This document shows positions 50,531-62,393 of a stretch of DNA of 64,000 bases, piece by piece. Position 1 is the stretch's first letter, and the number at the start of each line of letters is the position of its first letter. A program made the position numbers and the translations under genes. The notes beneath the pieces are model-generated. The model was not told the DNA's origin, searched no databases, and saw nothing but the letters and a program-made list of their open reading frames with translations. The stretch lies in sequence record NC_049850.1; one strand, written 5' to 3'.

Positions 50531-51094
50531 GGTCGGGCGGTCGTCGGTTCCTGTAATTGATCTTGAGGGTCACCTGTATGGGACCCATTGGTAATTTATT
50601 TACTGCACTCAGTTCATCACACGAGTGTAACAGTTTTTGGTTTCACGATCAAGCCCTCGACCACGAGCGGGCGCAGCCCCGAGTGGGCAGCGTGGAGCGT
50701 GAGCGACACGCATTCCCAAACCGTCAAGCATCCAAGCTGTTGAACACGTTGATCGTCGAGGATGCAGGGCTCGCTACGCTCTCCCTGCGAACCGCGTGCT
50801 GCGCACGGGTTGAATTCCTCGATTTTTGGGAGAAATATGGGGTGGAATGTGATGTAATTGAAAAGAGAGGCATTCATATAAGTAACGGGAGACCAGTTTT
50901 CCAATTACATGGCCCGGGACCACCCAAAAGTGACGAAAAGTCACGTTTTTCGCCTGTTTTCCACGCTTTTGTCGATTTTACCTACTTTTCTTCATTAAAA
51001 ACACGTGTAATCAGTGCTTGACACCACCCGTATGTCCCCTATACATTACGCGCACGCTATATCGCGCAATATGTCGCACACCCGATAGGAGAAT
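50531..51094. promoter_or_regulatory. non-coding strand-switch region: divergent promoters, possible replication origin
   Basis: No convincing ORF; AT-rich tracts; GCAGTAAATA on minus at 50597-50606; TTGACA-N18-TACATT on plus at 51018-51047. Confidence 0.55.
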
Positions 51095-51463
51095 ATGATG
51101 CACTACAACGCTTATGACGCACGCACGCTCGATGATGTCGTGCGCTTTGTCGCTCGCTCGATCTATGTCGCGGGTGCAGGCAACAACATGGACGCGCAAG
51201 ATGACCGCGATCACGTGCTGCACACCGCGAACATCGCACTCGACTTCAAACGCGTAGCCGGAGCCTTCAAGATCGGCTACGCCACCGCCGACTATCACGA
51301 TGGGGTGCTTGACATCGTTCTCCACCTCGTGCTACATTCCGGCCCTGACGTAATTCGAATCAAACTGGAGGTCGTAAATGGCAAAGTCATCAACAACGGG
51401 CAGCAGATCGCCCCTACTCTCGAACGCGGGCACGTCTACGTCGGCACGCAAGACCGTGCGTAA
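51095..51463 (+). CDS. hypothetical protein
   Basis: 122 aa, AGGAG RBS. Confidence 0.8.
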   Translation: MMHYNAYDARTLDDVVRFVARSIYVAGAGNNMDAQDDRDHVLHTANIALDFKRVAGAFKIGYATADYHDGVLDIVLHLVLHSGPDVIRIKLEVVNGKVINNGQQIAPTLERGHVYVGTQDRA

Positions 51464-52246: not shown

Positions 52247-52572
52247 GCATGGAGCAAGAACAACGCGTTGAGTTTGTCGAAGACTGGGCATCGGTGCTTC
52301 CCGAGCGCATTCGCAACTACAACAAGGACGCCATCGATAAAATCTCGATGGTGCTCGACGACGACAGTGTGTACGCTAAGCTGCACATTCCTATGAAGGA
52401 AGGTGAGTATGTGCAGGAAGTGGATGTCACGCACCTGCATCCCGTGCTGCGCGCCAAGCTCGCGCTCTCCCTGTTTCGTGACGCACTGGAACTCACGCGC
52501 AAAGCCCGACGCGAAGGCCGCCGTCAAGTCCGCAAGGCCATCAACGAAGCACTCAACCCCATGTACGACTAA
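52243..52572 (+). CDS. hypothetical protein
   Basis: 109 aa. Confidence 0.75.
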   Translation: MSMEQEQRVEFVEDWASVLPERIRNYNKDAIDKISMVLDDDSVYAKLHIPMKEGEYVQEVDVTHLHPVLRAKLALSLFRDALELTRKARREGRRQVRKAINEALNPMYD

Positions 52573-52583
52573 GGGAGGACAAC

Positions 52584-52730
52584 ATGGAGGATCAACCGAT
52601 CAAGCTCACGGAAGCCGAGACCGAACGCTTCCTCGAAGCACTGAAATCGCCGCCCCCGCCGAACGAAGCACTCGTCAAGGCGATGCGCAAATACTGGGAA
52701 CAGGAGGATACGCGTGGCCGAAATCAATAA
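52584..52730 (+). CDS. 48-aa peptide matching the C-terminal toxin-binding region of DUF1778 (TacA/AtaR/KacA) antitoxins; not in the ORF track
   Basis: AAGGGAGG RBS; MEDQPIKLTEAETERFLEALKSPPPPNEALVKAMRKYWEQEDTRGRNQ. Confidence 0.75.
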   Translation: MEDQPIKLTEAETERFLEALKSPPPPNEALVKAMRKYWEQEDTRGRNQ

Positions 52731-52959
52731 CGACCGCTACATGATCTATCAGGACAGCGACACGGACTACTGGCTCGCTTACATAAAGCTGGGCTCGGAC
52801 CCGGGCATCACGGTCAATGTCACGCACGTGCCTGAGCCCAACCGTGAGGCATTCGTGAAGCTGCTGCATGAGCAGATCATCCGGGCCGTAGAATCCGCGT
52901 TCAAGCGCGGGTCCAACGAAGCAAAACTTGGAGTGCGCATGGCGCTCCGACTCGACTAA
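52714..52959 (+). CDS. hypothetical protein
   Basis: 81 aa, GGAGG RBS, GTG start. Confidence 0.7.
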   Translation: MAEINNDRYMIYQDSDTDYWLAYIKLGSDPGITVNVTHVPEPNREAFVKLLHEQIIRAVESAFKRGSNEAKLGVRMALRLD

Positions 52960-52968
52960 GGAGAGCGT

Positions 52969-53247
52969 ATGAAAAAGTACATCGCATTAGCAGTCGTCGC
53001 ATTCACTCTCGCGGGCTGCGGCCCGGAGCCCGACACGCCGCTCGGCGGTGTCCAATACACGGAAGGTCGCTTCCAAGTCGCACGCGTCGGCGTCTTCCGC
53101 GACGAACTCGCGTACGGTGACAAACGCGGCATCTACACGTTCGTCGACACGAAGACGGGCAAGGAGTACGTCGGGGTCTCGGGCATCGGTATCGCGGAAA
53201 CGGGTTCGCATTCCAGCGGCAAGACCCAGACGCAGGACGAGCGATGA
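52969..53247 (+). CDS. putative lipoprotein
   Basis: MKK signal peptide plus LAGC lipobox. Confidence 0.8.
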   Translation: MKKYIALAVVAFTLAGCGPEPDTPLGGVQYTEGRFQVARVGVFRDELAYGDKRGIYTFVDTKTGKEYVGVSGIGIAETGSHSSGKTQTQDER

Positions 53248-54336: not shown

Positions 54337-54365
54337 TTGACGGTGTAGTAAAGACAGCGTATAGT
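54337..54365 (+). promoter_or_regulatory. tRNA-cluster promoter: sigma70 consensus with the phage motif in its spacer
   Basis: TTGACG-N17-TATAGT; GTAGTAAAGA at 54345-54354. Confidence 0.8.
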
Positions 54366-54374
54366 TCATGACTC

Positions 54375-54450
54375 GGGCTCCTAGCTTATTGGTTAGAAGC
54401 GTCCGGCTCATAACCGGTTGAAGAGGGTTCGATTCCCTCGGGGCCCACCA
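54375..54450 (+). tRNA. tRNA-CAT (Ile2 or Met)
   Basis: Cloverleaf, CTCATAA loop, GTTCGATTC, encoded CCA; C4:G69 favours Ile2. Confidence 0.9.
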
Positions 54451-54505
54451 ACAGAACAGGAGGCAATCATGAGTAGATTCTAGTGAACCAACTGGAGGTG
54501 TTCTC

Positions 54506-54793
54506 ATGAAAGCAAAAGCGTTTTACCATCGTGTTTGTAACTACGGCCCGGGCGGCTACCACTGCCCGTGCTGCGGTCCCGCACCAAGCATGCGCCGTAA
54601 GGAGCGTCAGCAACAACGACGCAAGTTCCATCGTCTGCTTGACGTTCTGGACAAGTTTGACACCGAAGTCAAAATCGAACACGACAATCTCGTGCTCGAC
54701 GATTTCGACGATGAGCGTCACGACTATTACAATGGCTGGGGCGGTGACCCTAGCCTGCACGATGAGTGGAAGGACTGGAAGAAGGCAGCTTGA
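54506..54793 (+). CDS. hypothetical protein with CPCC motif
   Basis: 95 aa, GGAGG RBS. Confidence 0.75.
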   Translation: MKAKAFYHRVCNYGPGGYHCPCCGPAPSMRRKERQQQRRKFHRLLDVLDKFDTEVKIEHDNLVLDDFDDERHDYYNGWGGDPSLHDEWKDWKKAA

Positions 54794-54857
54794 CCGTACT
54801 GCACCGCAAAGCCTTAGATGCGGTCTGCCGCGAGAACGTGAGCGGTGCAGTACACTT

Positions 54858-54943
54858 GCCCGGGTGGCGGAATTGCTAGACGCGACGGACTCAAAATCCG
54901 TTGGCCCTAGGCCGTGTGGGTTGGAGTCCCACCCCGGGCACCA
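54858..54943 (+). tRNA. tRNA-Leu(CAA)
   Basis: Long variable arm, CTCAAAA loop, CCA; T-loop variant TTGGAG. Confidence 0.92.
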
Positions 54944-54945
54944 TC

Positions 54946-55032
54946 GCGAGGATGGCGAAATTGGTAGACGCAGCAGGTTTAGGTCCTGCCGGTCGAAAGG
55001 CCGTGAGGGTTCGAATCCCTTTCCTCGCACCA
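54946..55032 (+). tRNA. tRNA-Leu(TAG)
   Basis: Long variable arm, TTTAGGT loop, GTTCGAATC, CCA. Confidence 0.95.
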
Positions 55033-55126
55033 CTTTGGATTGTAGGCGTAAATCGAGCGGGACTTCCCCACCTGCTCGATCAGGGCTGGTACACCTTATA
55101 GACCGTCGCCTACAATCCAAAGTGGT
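55029..55126 (+). ncRNA. candidate structured RNA (20-bp terminal stem with internal hairpins)
   Basis: ACCACTTTGGATTGTAGGCG / CGCCTACAATCCAAAGTGGT perfect inverted repeat. Confidence 0.55.
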
Positions 55127-55199
55127 TGTGGTAAAGATGTAGTGTGCTTTGCCTTTGAAGCGCGGGCGCTGTGGTTCTTAGGCCACGACAGCGCCCAAC

Positions 55200-55275
55200 G
55201 CCGGTTTAGCTCAGTTGGTAGAGCAGCGCCCTTGTAAAGCGCAGGTCACGGGTTCGAGCCCTGTAACCGGCACCA
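55200..55275 (+). tRNA. tRNA-Thr(TGT)
   Basis: Cloverleaf, CTTGTAA loop (C31.A39 mismatch), CCA. Confidence 0.92.
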
Positions 55276-55296
55276 CTAAACAATAACAATGAGGTT

Positions 55297-55638
55297 GTGA
55301 TGAATACGCATGAGGCTTACGAGATCGTCGATAGACTGACGCCTGTATCGGTCAGGAACCTCGAAGACGCGTACGTACGGTTCATGGAAATGGCGCTTCT
55401 GGTCGATCCACACCCGGAGACTGAAGACCGGGCCACACGGGATCGTGAGACATACACTGAATTCCTGCTACCGCCAGACGAGAATGGCAACCCCGTGATT
55501 TCGGTCCCGGGCATGCATCAGTTTCTGTCCAAGATCACGGGCCATCCGCTACAAACCTGTGTAGCCTTCGACTACGTTGACTTCCATCGCGTGCACGGCA
55601 CAACGATAGAGGACGCGGAACTCGCTGGCTACGTTTAA
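55297..55638 (+). CDS. hypothetical protein
   Basis: 113 aa, GAGG RBS. Confidence 0.75.
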   Translation: MMNTHEAYEIVDRLTPVSVRNLEDAYVRFMEMALLVDPHPETEDRATRDRETYTEFLLPPDENGNPVISVPGMHQFLSKITGHPLQTCVAFDYVDFHRVHGTTIEDAELAGYV

Positions 55639-55647
55639 GGACGCCCA

Positions 55648-55860
55648 ATGGAAGAAGACGCATACAGGTTCAGTGTGGCCGCGCTCAAGAGCGAGTACGA
55701 CGCTGAACTGCACGAACTGCGCAAGACAGTGCTTGAAGGTCGCGGTGACGTGGCGGGGTTTATCAAACTCAAGGAGTCGCTTGACTCAAGGCTGAAGGAC
55801 CGCGTTAGCGCGGTTACTGGCGCACGCAGTCAAACGCAGAACAAGCTGCTGTACAACTGA
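55648..55860 (+). CDS. hypothetical protein
   Basis: 70 aa. Confidence 0.7.
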   Translation: MEEDAYRFSVAALKSEYDAELHELRKTVLEGRGDVAGFIKLKESLDSRLKDRVSAVTGARSQTQNKLLYN

Positions 55861-55866
55861 ACAAGA

Positions 55867-55943
55867 CTCCGCTTAGCGCAGCCCGGTAGCGCACCTGATT
55901 TGGGATCAGGGGGTCGCAGGTTCGAATCCTGTAGCGGAGACCA
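55867..55943 (+). tRNA. tRNA-Pro(TGG)
   Basis: C1:G72, TTTGGGA loop, GTTCGAATC, CCA. Confidence 0.95.
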
Positions 55944-55961
55944 TACAACATAGGAGGTGTC

Positions 55962-56312
55962 TTGGAAACTACTTACGACTACAGCCTTACGTTCGACCTG
56001 ACTGACATCATCGTGTTCGTTCTGATCGCGATCATGATCAAGATGGTCATCGACATCGTGCGTGAGCGCATGCGAATACGCAGGCTCCGACGCGACATGG
56101 AGGCAAACGGCAATCTTCCGTGCATCACAATCTCGGGCAACGACGATGTGTCGATCTCGGGTCTTGTGTACGAAGGGCGGCCAATCCCCTCGGTCGATAT
56201 CAAGAACAAAGCGCTGTTCGTCGACGGTCAGTTCAAGCGCCGCCTCGCCCGCAATAGCCGTGTCTACAACCGTGGCATCGGCATCTTCGCGGACGGCAAG
56301 TACATGGGGTAA
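55962..56312 (+). CDS. membrane-anchored hypothetical protein
   Basis: AGGAGG RBS, TTG start, one TM helix. Confidence 0.7.
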   Translation: METTYDYSLTFDLTDIIVFVLIAIMIKMVIDIVRERMRIRRLRRDMEANGNLPCITISGNDDVSISGLVYEGRPIPSVDIKNKALFVDGQFKRRLARNSRVYNRGIGIFADGKYMG

Positions 56313-56316
56313 TACC

Positions 56317-56781
56317 ATGCGCAGCATCTTTCACATTTCGGTCGGCTCCGATAACTGGAACCCGACCGAGGCAGAACTTGCTGGCATCGTTCGCAAGTTC
56401 AAAGAACTGGAAGCAAAGCAGGGTCCGCGTCAGACGCTTCCCGATACACGCAAGATCATCCACATCAGTGTGGGTGCTGAGGACTGGACGCCTACCGCAG
56501 ACGAATTGCTGGCAATCGTTGAGCAGTTCCAGTGCGCGGACCTCGATCCGCTCGGTGGGTGGATTGCAACACGTCGAGGCGTCAACGTCACTGACATCGA
56601 GACCGCAGCACAGCCCACACTCGTGGTGAACGGAACGACCTACGAAAGTGCGGCCCGTGCTTCGCTACGTCAGGACTCCATCGACCGGCTTGAGGCCATC
56701 CGCGAAAACTTGCGTGCGTTCAAGCTGAGCACGCTCGATGTCGACACACTGATCAATAGGTTGTCGACGTATCAACTTTAA
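56317..56781 (+). CDS. hypothetical protein with a duplicated HISVG..W.PT..EL motif
   Basis: Two internal repeats; 154 aa. Confidence 0.75.
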   Translation: MRSIFHISVGSDNWNPTEAELAGIVRKFKELEAKQGPRQTLPDTRKIIHISVGAEDWTPTADELLAIVEQFQCADLDPLGGWIATRRGVNVTDIETAAQPTLVVNGTTYESAARASLRQDSIDRLEAIRENLRAFKLSTLDVDTLINRLSTYQL

Positions 56782-56802
56782 CCGAAAAGCTTAGGACAAC
56801 AA

Positions 56803-57225
56803 ATGAAACAACTCAACACGCAACGCCGCTTCGAATGCCTGACCACGGAAGGTACGTGGGTCTCCGTGCACTGGGAGCAACTGGAACCGGGCGACATGAT
56901 CCGCCTGCTCCCCGCTGTAGGCATCACCGAGGACGTGCCGCCGACCGATGTATTCGTCGTCATGGACACGCCGACCGTGAACGTGCGTTCGGTGAACGAA
57001 ATCCGTGCCGAACAAGCAGCCGCAGCGCAGCGTGAAGCGCTGGCCAACACGGAAGGCGTCGATGCTACCCAAGCGGCCCAGAGCGATGTCAACACGGCAG
57101 TCGACGCAGTGAACGCTGTCAAGGAGGCCGCTCGGGAAGCAGTGAAGGCCAAGAAGACTCCGAGCCCGAAGGTTCCGGCACCGGCCCGCAAGCCGCGCAC
57201 GCGCAAGGTCGCGACGCCGAAGTAA
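56803..57225 (+). CDS. hypothetical protein with a basic C-terminal tail
   Basis: 140 aa, AGGA RBS. Confidence 0.75.
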   Translation: MKQLNTQRRFECLTTEGTWVSVHWEQLEPGDMIRLLPAVGITEDVPPTDVFVVMDTPTVNVRSVNEIRAEQAAAAQREALANTEGVDATQAAQSDVNTAVDAVNAVKEAAREAVKAKKTPSPKVPAPARKPRTRKVATPK

Positions 57226-57337
57226 TTGCTGTGTAGTAAATACGTTGGGTGATAGCTGAAACGCAATCCCCAATTTGAGTTGTACAGAAAACGAGTGCTG
57301 GTTGCCGGATGCGGTTGTTACCCGGAACAGCACACGC

Positions 57338-57427
57338 GGATGGGTTCCCGAGCGGCTAAAGGGGGTGGACTGTAAATCCACCGGGCCTCAGTGTCCTACG
57401 TTGGTTCGAATCCAACTCCATCCACCA
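57338..57427 (+). tRNA. tRNA-Tyr(GTA)
   Basis: CTGTAAA loop, long variable arm, CCA. Confidence 0.95.
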
Positions 57428-57473
57428 GAACATAAGCAGGACCCCTGAACATCAGGGCAACAAGGAAAAAGCA

Positions 57474-57755
57474 ATGCCGATTAAGCCGCTGTATGACAAG
57501 GTGGTGGTGCGTACCACCGACACTGACCGTACGACTGTCGGGGGCATCGTGATCCCCGCTGCTTCGCTCAAGGCGAATCAGGCTGTCGTGGTTGCTGTCG
57601 GTGACGGCCACCTGATGCAAGATGGCACACTGCGACCGCTGTCCGTGAAGGTCGGTGACGTGGTGTATCTCTCGCACGAAGGCTCCGAGATCGAAGTCGA
57701 TGGCGAAAAGCTTCGCGTCTTCATCGAAGGCGATCTGATCGGAGTCCTCAACTAA
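57474..57755 (+). CDS. groES: co-chaperonin GroES
   Basis: IKPLYDKVVV...T.GGIVIP...VVAVGDG...VKVGDVV...G.EIEVDGE...E.DLIGV. Confidence 0.95.
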   Translation: MPIKPLYDKVVVRTTDTDRTTVGGIVIPAASLKANQAVVVAVGDGHLMQDGTLRPLSVKVGDVVYLSHEGSEIEVDGEKLRVFIEGDLIGVLN

Positions 57756-57764
57756 GCAGTACAT

Positions 57765-57840
57765 TCCGGGGTAGCTCAGTTGGTAGAGTAGGGGACTGTT
57801 AATCCCTTGGTCACTGGTTCGAACCCAGTCCCCGGAGCCA
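57765..57840 (+). tRNA. tRNA-Asn(GTT)
   Basis: CTGTTAA loop, G73, CCA. Confidence 0.95.
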
Positions 57841-57944
57841 GTAACGATCACCTGAAAGCGAAACTATGTCCACCAGTACTCATGCACTGACCTGCCGCTG
57901 ACTATTGGGTTGTGAATCAGACCATCAGGTGTTCTAAGCAGTAC

Positions 57945-58020
57945 GCGCGGGTAGCTCAGTTGGTAGAGCACCGGACTGAAAATCCGGGTGTCGCTGGTTC
58001 GAGTCCGGCCCTGCGCACCA
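57945..58020 (+). tRNA. tRNA-Phe(GAA)
   Basis: CTGAAAA loop, CCA. Confidence 0.95.
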
Positions 58021-58238
58021 GCGTTGTGATCGAGTGAAAATCGTAGGAAGGGGCCGATTACCCTGACCGCAATCTGTAGGTGGACCGGCTGGCCCTCATC
58101 CTGCTAGTGTAGATTTTTCCCATGTGGTTTCGATCAACTAATCATTGTGTGGTGTAGCGCACTCAATTAGACGGCCGGGCTCCGGAGCCCGCGTACCATA
58201 CCACCCCGGATGGAAACCGTTGAATAGTCCGGGTCGAT

Positions 58239-58315
58239 AGGGGTGTCGCCAAGCTGGTTAAGGCAACGGATTTTGATTCCGTCATGCGTAGGTTCGAATC
58301 CTACCGCCCCTTCCA
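58239..58315 (+). tRNA. tRNA-Gln(TTG)
   Basis: TTTTGAT loop, GCCAAG D-arm, CCA; discriminator U. Confidence 0.9.
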
Positions 58316-61499: not shown

Positions 61500-62393
61500 A
61501 TGTCCAAACTCGTAACCGTGCAGATCAAGCCACGGTCGTTTCTTCAGAAGAAGTTCTCCGCTGGCCAGATGTGGTTCTTAGCCGAGCCCATTGCCATTGA
61601 CGGGGTGTACAACGGCAACTACGAGGTTGCTATCGCTGGCGGTAGGCACGTGATCAGTGGCCGCAGCCTGAACGTTCAGACGTGGACCACTTACGAGTCG
61701 CCTGTAGAGTTGCTGACGCGCCTAAACGGCCACATCTACTCGACAAGCGGCGGTCCCACCAAGCACGTGGAACTGCGGCCCGAGGACGTTCAGCCTCCGT
61801 CACCGCCCGAGCGCACGTTCGTCATGATCGACATCGAGAGTCTGGGGCTGCGCGTAGGATCGCCTGTCCTGTCTATCGGGGCGTGCGCCGTGCAACGCGG
61901 TCTCGGCATCATCGATGAATTCAGCGTCGTGCTCGATCTTCAAGAGCAACTGGACAAGGGCGCGAAGGTAGAGGCCGACGCCTTCTACTGGTGGCTGCGC
62001 CAGCCCGAAAAGCCGCGTCTTGCCATCGCAGGCCCAGACGTGAAGTACTCGACGCTGGAAGAGGCGCGCGAGCAACTGACCCACTTCTGGGCGCGCGTAG
62101 AGGCCCACCCGTGCGTCGTGGGTGGTAGCGTGTTCGCGATGGCCCTCGGCAACGACTTCGACCTCGCACAACTCGACCTGTGGTTCAATGGCAACGTGCC
62201 ATGGCACTACCGCGACAAGGTGTGCCTGCGCGCCCTGATCAACACGCACCCGAACTCGGTGGTGTGGGATAGCGAGGACAACTTCGGCAAGGATCGCGAA
62301 GACCTGCACACGGCACTCGGTGACGCGAAGGCCCAATCCCGGATGCTCATGCGCATGGTCGCCCGCCATCCCGAAATCTCGCAGGTGGTGTGA
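61500..62393 (+). CDS. DEDDh 3'-5' exonuclease with an N-terminal extension
   Basis: MIDIESLG, GNDFD, HTALGDA. Confidence 0.88.
   Translation: MSKLVTVQIKPRSFLQKKFSAGQMWFLAEPIAIDGVYNGNYEVAIAGGRHVISGRSLNVQTWTTYESPVELLTRLNGHIYSTSGGPTKHVELRPEDVQPPSPPERTFVMIDIESLGLRVGSPVLSIGACAVQRGLGIIDEFSVVLDLQEQLDKGAKVEADAFYWWLRQPEKPRLAIAGPDVKYSTLEEAREQLTHFWARVEAHPCVVGGSVFAMALGNDFDLAQLDLWFNGNVPWHYRDKVCLRALINTHPNSVVWDSEDNFGKDREDLHTALGDAKAQSRMLMRMVARHPEISQVV

Follow-up and report, generated by a model that had tools for sequence, protein, structure and literature searches.

BcepSaruman (genus Sarumanvirus; NC_049850.1, 263,735 bp) is a jumbo Burkholderia phage whose host is Burkholderia cenocepacia. One of its genes, gp199, encodes a 48-amino-acid protein whose homology to DUF1778 antitoxins is confined to their C-terminal, toxin-wrapping segment. 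We analyzed a 64,000-nucleotide stretch of this genome, hereafter the window, which is 100% identical to the record and spans its bases 62001 to 126000 (window base 1 is record base 62001); positions below are window positions unless the record is named. Judging from sequence relationships, we give a probability of roughly one-half to the reading of gp199 as an orphan fragment of a type II antitoxin that serves the phage in counter-defense against a GNAT toxin of the host.

A free-standing antitoxin tail

The Pfam profile PF08681 (TacA1-like, DUF1778) matches gp199 with 29 bits, above its curated cut-off of 21, and with an E-value of 1e-6 that is still near 1e-3 after correction for the window's 922 six-frame fragments. 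Only the end of the profile is aligned (Table 1), and the same stretch of gp199, residues 3 to 37, aligns to residues 56 to 85 of both AtaR and KacA and to TacA3. A single-sequence search of the PDB matched DUF1778 chains weakly. When a profile of gp199 and ten relatives served as the query, seven DUF1778 chains ranked first, and in every one the alignment ran through the last 30 residues. These chains are 6gtq_C, a C-terminal fragment of AtaR (E=3.7e-8, the top of a range from 4e-8 to 7e-4), the TacA3 peptide 7ak9_C (E=7.6e-8), AtaR in 6ajm and 6ajn (E about 2e-7), the DUF1778 protein 7zg5 (E=2.2e-7), the conserved hypothetical protein 1y9b (E=2.4e-5) and KacA in 5zgn (E=7e-4). According to the PDB titles, isolated C-terminal pieces of the antitoxins sit on their toxins in the crystals. 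The NCBIfam, PHROGs and PADLOC libraries gave no match to gp199. The likeness to DUF1778 tails is beyond chance. The first-pass annotation, made from the letters of the window, had recognized this segment and had named a hidden Markov model (HMM) search against DUF1778 as the way to check it; both the Pfam and the PDB profile matches bear it out.

The reading frame of gp199 has an in-frame stop at 52479 to 52481, 34 codons upstream, and contains no start codon before 52584; the N terminus is therefore fixed, and a longer form is ruled out. The 48-residue open reading frame (ORF) had been given exactly in the first-pass annotation, whose quoted peptide is residues 4 to 37. Its remark that the ORF had been missed is true of the program-made track and of that track solely, because RefSeq annotates the gene as H1O16_gp199, “hypothetical protein.” Likewise, the strong ribosome-binding site that it reported is found in BcepSaruman (GGGAGGA), while the orthologs in phage BcepSauron and in the Sequence Read Archive contig L003 carry the weaker GGCAGGAAA at the same place.

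The truncation is real: gp199 is the toxin-wrapping module alone, encoded by a phage without a GNAT toxin of its own. The protein lacks the ribbon-helix-helix (RHH) DNA-binding and dimerization domain, for which its frame leaves no room, and its gene lacks an overlapping or adjacent downstream GNAT gene of ~170 codons. The phage genome was searched piecewise, as all six-frame fragments. With an HMM trained on the N-terminal RHH halves of 23 canonical antitoxins, no match was obtained in the whole genome (best E=0.22), which agrees with the earlier proposal that the DNA-binding part had been dropped. A second HMM, built from 33 GNAT genes that lie downstream of canonical relatives in bacterial genomes, found nothing significant (best E=0.066 in the window and 2.4 elsewhere in the genome); held-out bacterial GNAT loci, used as controls, scored E-values below 1e-25. 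No annotated acetyltransferase was present in five stretches outside the window or at 110.6 to 118.7 kb inside it, and no second copy of the tail was found in the whole phage genome, leaving gp199 as the sole copy. A split antitoxin with its RHH half in the upstream gene gp198 was rejected, as gp198 has no Pfam match and the RHH HMM gave a null result.

In bacteria, the same segment is typically part of a complete module. With one genome scanned per species, 43 loci came up. Some 40 of them encode antitoxins of 89 to 124 amino acids with an RHH or AbrB-like N terminus, and the next ORF, which overlaps, is roughly 170 amino acids long; eight of these ORFs were scanned, and all are matched by Pfam GNAT models, seven above the curated cut-off. 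In a plasmid collection, gp199 finds 177 records, including 100 from Ralstonia, 41 from Burkholderia and 3 from Cupriavidus, and the three plasmid relatives that we opened are all DUF1778-GNAT pairs. By homology, the nearest plasmid-borne relatives of gp199 are those of Burkholderiaceae and, among the examined ones, are canonical pairs. Tail identity to gp199 is 56% for Cupriavidus pMTS3 and 47% for a B. orbicola protein; a B. savannae plasmid antitoxin is 91% identical to the latter, and a protein identical to the B. savannae one is present in B. cepacia. In the host species, BCAM0271/0272 of B. cenocepacia J2315 is a validated module, whose GNAT toxin acetylates tRNA and, with acetyl-CoA, blocks translation (PMC7798474).

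A single-chain AlphaFold2 (AF2) model of gp199, computed from an alignment of 55 short relatives, has a mean predicted local distance difference test (pLDDT) score of 90 and consists of an extended start, a helix, an SPPPPN linker and a second helix. In this predicted fold, the order of elements matches that of the KacA tail, which runs through βB (residues 52 to 56), αC (57 to 70), 71-PPAP-74 and αD (75 to 86) (PMC6698736). Anchoring the two proteins on the linker places the hydrophobic KacA contact residues V64, M65, A67 and I68 at F16, L17, A19 and L20 of gp199. Among the 55 short relatives P23 and P26 are invariant, and P24, N27, A29 and L30 each reach 90% conservation or more. The tryptophan of the tail motif given in the first-pass annotation is missing from gp199, which has T13 at this position, as does the TacA3 peptide 7ak9_C; W61 is also named as a KacA contact residue (PMC6698736), and W61 of AtaR is likewise replaced by Thr in gp199.

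Proposed role and competing explanations

In the mechanism that we propose, the phage would make the gp199 peptide during infection, and the peptide would bind a TacT/AtaT-type GNAT toxin of its Burkholderia cepacia-complex host, substituting on the toxin for the host's own labile antitoxin. Host gene expression would collapse, yet the toxin, being occupied by gp199, could therefore neither acetylate aminoacyl-tRNAs nor stop translation. The outcome would be a Dmd-like counter-defense of benefit to the phage. Among the independent phage-like contigs that carry stand-alone tails, no GNAT was called in the flanks that were read (2.5 to 10 kb), and no neighbor family is common to these loci, which argues for a target in the host.

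Several points weigh against this reading. Foldseek ranks the toxin-bound tails of AtaR, KacA and TacA3 first (six of nine matches; root-mean-square deviation, 1.4 to 2.5 Å), with E-values of 4 to 8 that are not significant, and the structural match is therefore consistency, not proof. The R77A substitution in KacA abolishes neutralization (PMC6698736), and with PPxP anchoring the R77 position is Ala29 in gp199, which has no basic residue there; this objection is softened because Ala also occupies this position in canonical GNAT-paired antitoxins, for example in Cupriavidus, Burkholderia and Planctomyces. The tail identities given above are with B. orbicola and Cupriavidus proteins, and the estimate of selection on gp199 given below is based on just nine substitutions. 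PADLOC has no GNAT/DUF1778 model among known or candidate defense systems, and our literature search found no paper showing that GNAT/DUF1778 modules defend against phages. High specificity is ascribed to type II antitoxins (PMC11825919), and because of this the broad anti-GNAT action claimed in the first-pass annotation is unlikely; a narrow toxin range is more likely for gp199. Finally, bacterial genomes contain short orphan relatives with no adjacent GNAT, and a ParG-like protein and membrane proteins of about 400 amino acids also contain the motif internally. These orphan relatives and embedded motifs cut against one single role for the tail.

The last two observations lend themselves to a different explanation, namely, that gp199 is a portable interaction peptide that binds a partner outside toxin-antitoxin (TA) systems, such as a different enzyme of the GNAT fold or some unrelated protein of the host or the phage, in which case homology to antitoxins would tell little of its role. 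The bacterial orphans adjoin genes for a glyoxalase, a HEAT-repeat protein or a large unknown protein. The proteins that embed the motif are one of 142 amino acids beside a ParA-like gene and others of 401 to 439 amino acids, and other partners are therefore possible; ORF215 of Klebsiella phage VAC13 couples the tail to a Cys-rich N terminus. We nevertheless regard this explanation as unlikely. In about 40 of the 43 bacterial loci the segment belongs to a canonical antitoxin placed before the ~170-amino-acid ORF, a GNAT in each case scanned, and GNAT toxins are the only solved partners of the segment.

It is improbable, in our view, that gp199 is the leftover of a captured TA module, retained by chance and without a role. 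The protein is indeed very short, its ribosome-binding site is strong in one of three orthologs, and its last eight residues vary freely among them. On the other side, three diverged sequences all keep the ORF intact, and the orthologs of BcepSauron (85% identity) and of contig L003 (75% identity by BLASTP) stand in the same gene order. Between BcepSaruman and BcepSauron, codons 1 to 40 show five synonymous and four nonsynonymous changes, with a ratio of nonsynonymous to synonymous rates (dN/dS) of 0.20, like that of four neighboring genes (0.03 to 0.29). The G+C content of gp199 (56.5%) is the same as the phage background, and a recent capture of the gene was rejected on this ground. Tails truncated in the same way are encoded on unrelated phage contigs as well, and every family position conserved in at least 90% of the members is kept in gp199.

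Even less probable is the explanation that gp199 is the antitoxin of a phage-borne toxin other than a GNAT, for example the product of the next gene, gp200. The order of the two genes and their 17-nucleotide overlap resemble a TA operon, but overlapping genes are usual in the gene run that contains gp199. The gp200 protein matches no Pfam family and does not match the GNAT-toxin HMM, and it is not a shared neighbor in the other loci with stand-alone tails; we therefore rejected gp200 as a toxin. The explanation that gp199, a proline-rich helical peptide, resembles DUF1778 tails by chance is close to refuted: the query is short and its single-sequence search scored staphylococcal protein A repeats and amyloid-like proteins similarly, but these PDB matches are sums of insignificant repeats, while the Pfam score exceeds the curated cut-off, the reciprocal profile search puts the seven DUF1778 chains first, and relatives of gp199 carry precomputed PF08681 matches.

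Gene neighborhood and other forms of the tail

Table 1. Features of gp199 and its surroundings in BcepSaruman (window positions unless marked as record positions)
Feature	Position	Strand	Details
Sigma-70-like site, candidate promoter	51018-51047	+	TTGACA, 18 nt, TACATT; heads the plus-strand run with gp199
Sigma-70-like site	51309-51338		Same hexamers (TTGACA/TACATT), 18 nt; about 290 bp from the site at 51018-51047
Shine-Dalgarno-like GGGAGGA	52573-52579	+	Direct reading; 5 nt from GGAGG to ATG
gp199 ORF	52584-52730	+	ATG start, 48 amino acids plus stop; stand-alone DUF1778 C-terminal segment
PF08681-aligned stretch, residues 3-37	52590-52694	+	Profile positions 44-78 of 80 only
Extended segment, residues 5-8 (P-I-K-L)	52596-52607	+	Nonhelical in AF2 model; putative KacA βB equivalent, by PPxP anchoring
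Predicted helix, residues 10-21	52611-52646	+	AF2 model; KacA αC equivalent
Proline linker, residues 22-27 (S-P-P-P-P-N)	52647-52664	+	Most conserved part of the family
Predicted helix, residues 28-46	52665-52721	+	AF2 model; KacA αD equivalent
gp200	52714-52959	+	81 amino acids from a GTG; first 17 nt shared with the end of gp199; not a GNAT
Sigma-70-like site	54337-54365		TTGACG, 17 nt, TATAGT; just before tRNA-Met
Nine tRNA genes	54375-58315		Met-CAT, Leu (two), Thr, Pro, Tyr, Asn, Phe, Gln; small ORFs between them
RNA ligase	168068-168580 (record)		In L063-L065
tRNA-His guanylyltransferase (Thg1)	217502-218353 (record)		In L063-L065
RnlA-like RNA ligase	230122-231273 (record)		In L063-L065
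Nucleotidyltransferase	231964-232800 (record)		In L063-L065

The first-pass annotation had placed gp199 in an early operon, a claim that is unsupported. What points to it are matches to the sigma-70-like consensus, and the promoter evidence is weak because such sites are not enriched, six being found versus 3.2 ± 1.6 in shuffled sequences. The only transcriptome of a relative, that of the related phage Matilda, missed the early phase. The tRNA gene cluster begins 1.6 kb downstream of gp199. Together with Thg1, the RNA ligases and the nucleotidyltransferase encoded elsewhere in the genome, these tRNA genes look like a tRNA supply-and-repair set and, purely as context, would fit a genome that protects translation. 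After gp200, at positions 52969 to 53247, gp201 encodes a 92-amino-acid predicted lipoprotein with a lipobox signal, which matches PHROG 16585 (E=5e-14) and shows a faint likeness to Cor-type superinfection-exclusion proteins; its dN/dS versus BcepSauron is 0.03.

A single-sequence word search found one close relative of gp199. A phmmer search of 1.84 billion representative sequences returned ten matches, none of them a canonical antitoxin; the closest are proteins of 46 to 51 amino acids, along with proteins that carry the tail in two or three tandem copies. Stand-alone tails occur in varied settings: P0009 follows MazG on a 45.7-kb contig of small same-strand genes, P0011 lies in a lambdoid nin-like region (YqaJ, RusA, DUF551), P0010 follows a RelB-like RHH gene, and on the IMG/VR contig L015 the tail gene stands between two very large genes. 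When gp199, P0009 and P0011 were used as tblastn queries against cultured phages, BcepSaruman and BcepSauron alone were matched. The tandem forms P0003 (L008:279-683), P0006, P0007 and P0008 (L012:289-684) are metagenomic proteins of 131 to 177 amino acids with two or three TacA-like tails and no other Pfam family; P0006 and P0007 have two PF08681 stretches each, and the contigs are short.

In two independent assemblies that agree with each other (L009:880-1223 and L010), a 66-amino-acid RelB-family gene overlaps the start of a gene for a 51-amino-acid TacA-like tail. The RelB-family match covers profile positions 2 to 53 of 82, which is the RHH part, and the partial next gene has no GNAT match; this arrangement may be a split or chimeric antitoxin. 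On a 60.7-kb IMG/VR contig (L014:3216-4303), a gene for a putative ParA-like ATPase, as judged from its translation, is followed by one for a 142-amino-acid ParG-like protein, of which residues 41 to 75 match PF08681 positions 45 to 79 with 25.6 bits and the C terminus looks RHH-like, a domain order that is the reverse of that in canonical antitoxins. Two further viral contigs (L016:3143-4348 and L017:3140-4459) encode proteins of 401 to 439 amino acids that have an internal ENPPAPNE motif and N termini resembling membrane helices plus a coiled coil, and an ORF of 290 to 322 amino acids follows. Among bacteria, a 4.7-Mb genome contig (L069) carries a gene for a 62-amino-acid orphan TacA-like protein between the genes for the small and large subunits of carbamoyl-phosphate synthase, and a separate pair, a 73-amino-acid gene and a 167-amino-acid GNAT, is found within that gap as well, 1.2 kb farther downstream.

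A more general reading would be that stand-alone and tandem TacA-like tails are widespread GNAT-neutralizing peptides of phages and mobile elements, that GNAT/DUF1778 modules are abortive-infection defenses, and that the proteins with two or three copies (P0003 and P0006 to P0008) are multivalent toxin sponges. We put this forward tentatively, as a possibility that is more doubtful than the role proposed for gp199 itself.

Relation to known antitoxins and phage counter-defenses

With TacA of Salmonella, AtaR of E. coli, KacA of Klebsiella and the family PF08681, gp199 shares the C-terminal strand/helix/PPxP/helix segment, which in the solved TacA, AtaR and KacA complexes wraps the GNAT toxin; gp199 and the TacA3 peptide share 46% identity across 28 Foldseek columns. 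Unlike these antitoxins, gp199 is encoded by a phage and has no RHH, operator binding, dimerization module or adjacent toxin gene. The crystallized complexes of the AtaR C terminus with AtaT (6gtq and 6gtr) and of the TacA3 peptide with TacT3 (7ak9) contain the same segment in the same length class (36 to 46 residues), with the tail alone occupying the toxin; those fragments are laboratory truncations, whereas gp199 is a natural gene.

In concept, the proposed role of gp199 is like that of T4 Dmd, AdfA and TifA, by which a lytic phage supplies a substitute toxin neutralizer. These proteins are not presented as antitoxin homologs in the parts of the literature considered here, whereas gp199 is an antitoxin fragment. 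A parallel is also offered by AdfN, a DarG1-like antitoxin that T4-like phages carry as an orphan (PMC11825919), and by phage DarG-type mimics, as these are orphan antitoxin homologs that serve lytic phages in counter-defense. AdfN, called the first such case by its authors, is an enzyme that reverses the product of the toxin, following type IV logic, while gp199 would act as a type II tail, by binding alone; the same authors note that orphan type II antitoxins of the binding type are hard to detect (PMC11825919).

The protein ORF215 of vB_KpnM_VAC13 (QWY13811.1; L077:4887-5198, record positions 139886 to 140197 of this phage) resembles gp199 in that it comes from a lytic phage and has a TacA-like segment at its C terminus. 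It differs in its length of 103 amino acids, in its Cys-rich N-terminal part, which resembles a zinc ribbon by eye, and in its subthreshold Pfam score (18.4 bits versus the cut-off of 21). The two flanking ORFs that were scanned have no Pfam family. A published table lists ORF215 as “DUF1778 domain-containing” without analysis (PMC10100988), and the AntiDefenseFinder paper names AdfA alone where it mentions anti-TA functions and never mentions GNAT. The first-pass annotation was not aware of any description of such a protein; we found none beyond the table entries for VAC13 and VAC66, given without analysis.

So far, orphan antitoxins in lytic phages have been shown for enzymatic, DarG-type antitoxins, and the tails of type II antitoxins usually escape detection because they are disordered and short. 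In gp199 we have a detectable, conserved type II tail that is stripped to its neutralizing module. If the proposed role is true, GNAT/DUF1778 modules, the biological role of which is still debated, would gain a role in phage defense, and gp199 would be a natural minimal inhibitor of tRNA-acetylating toxins. It would also illustrate a simple route to phage counter-defense, in which the antitoxin tail is kept and the repressor is dropped.
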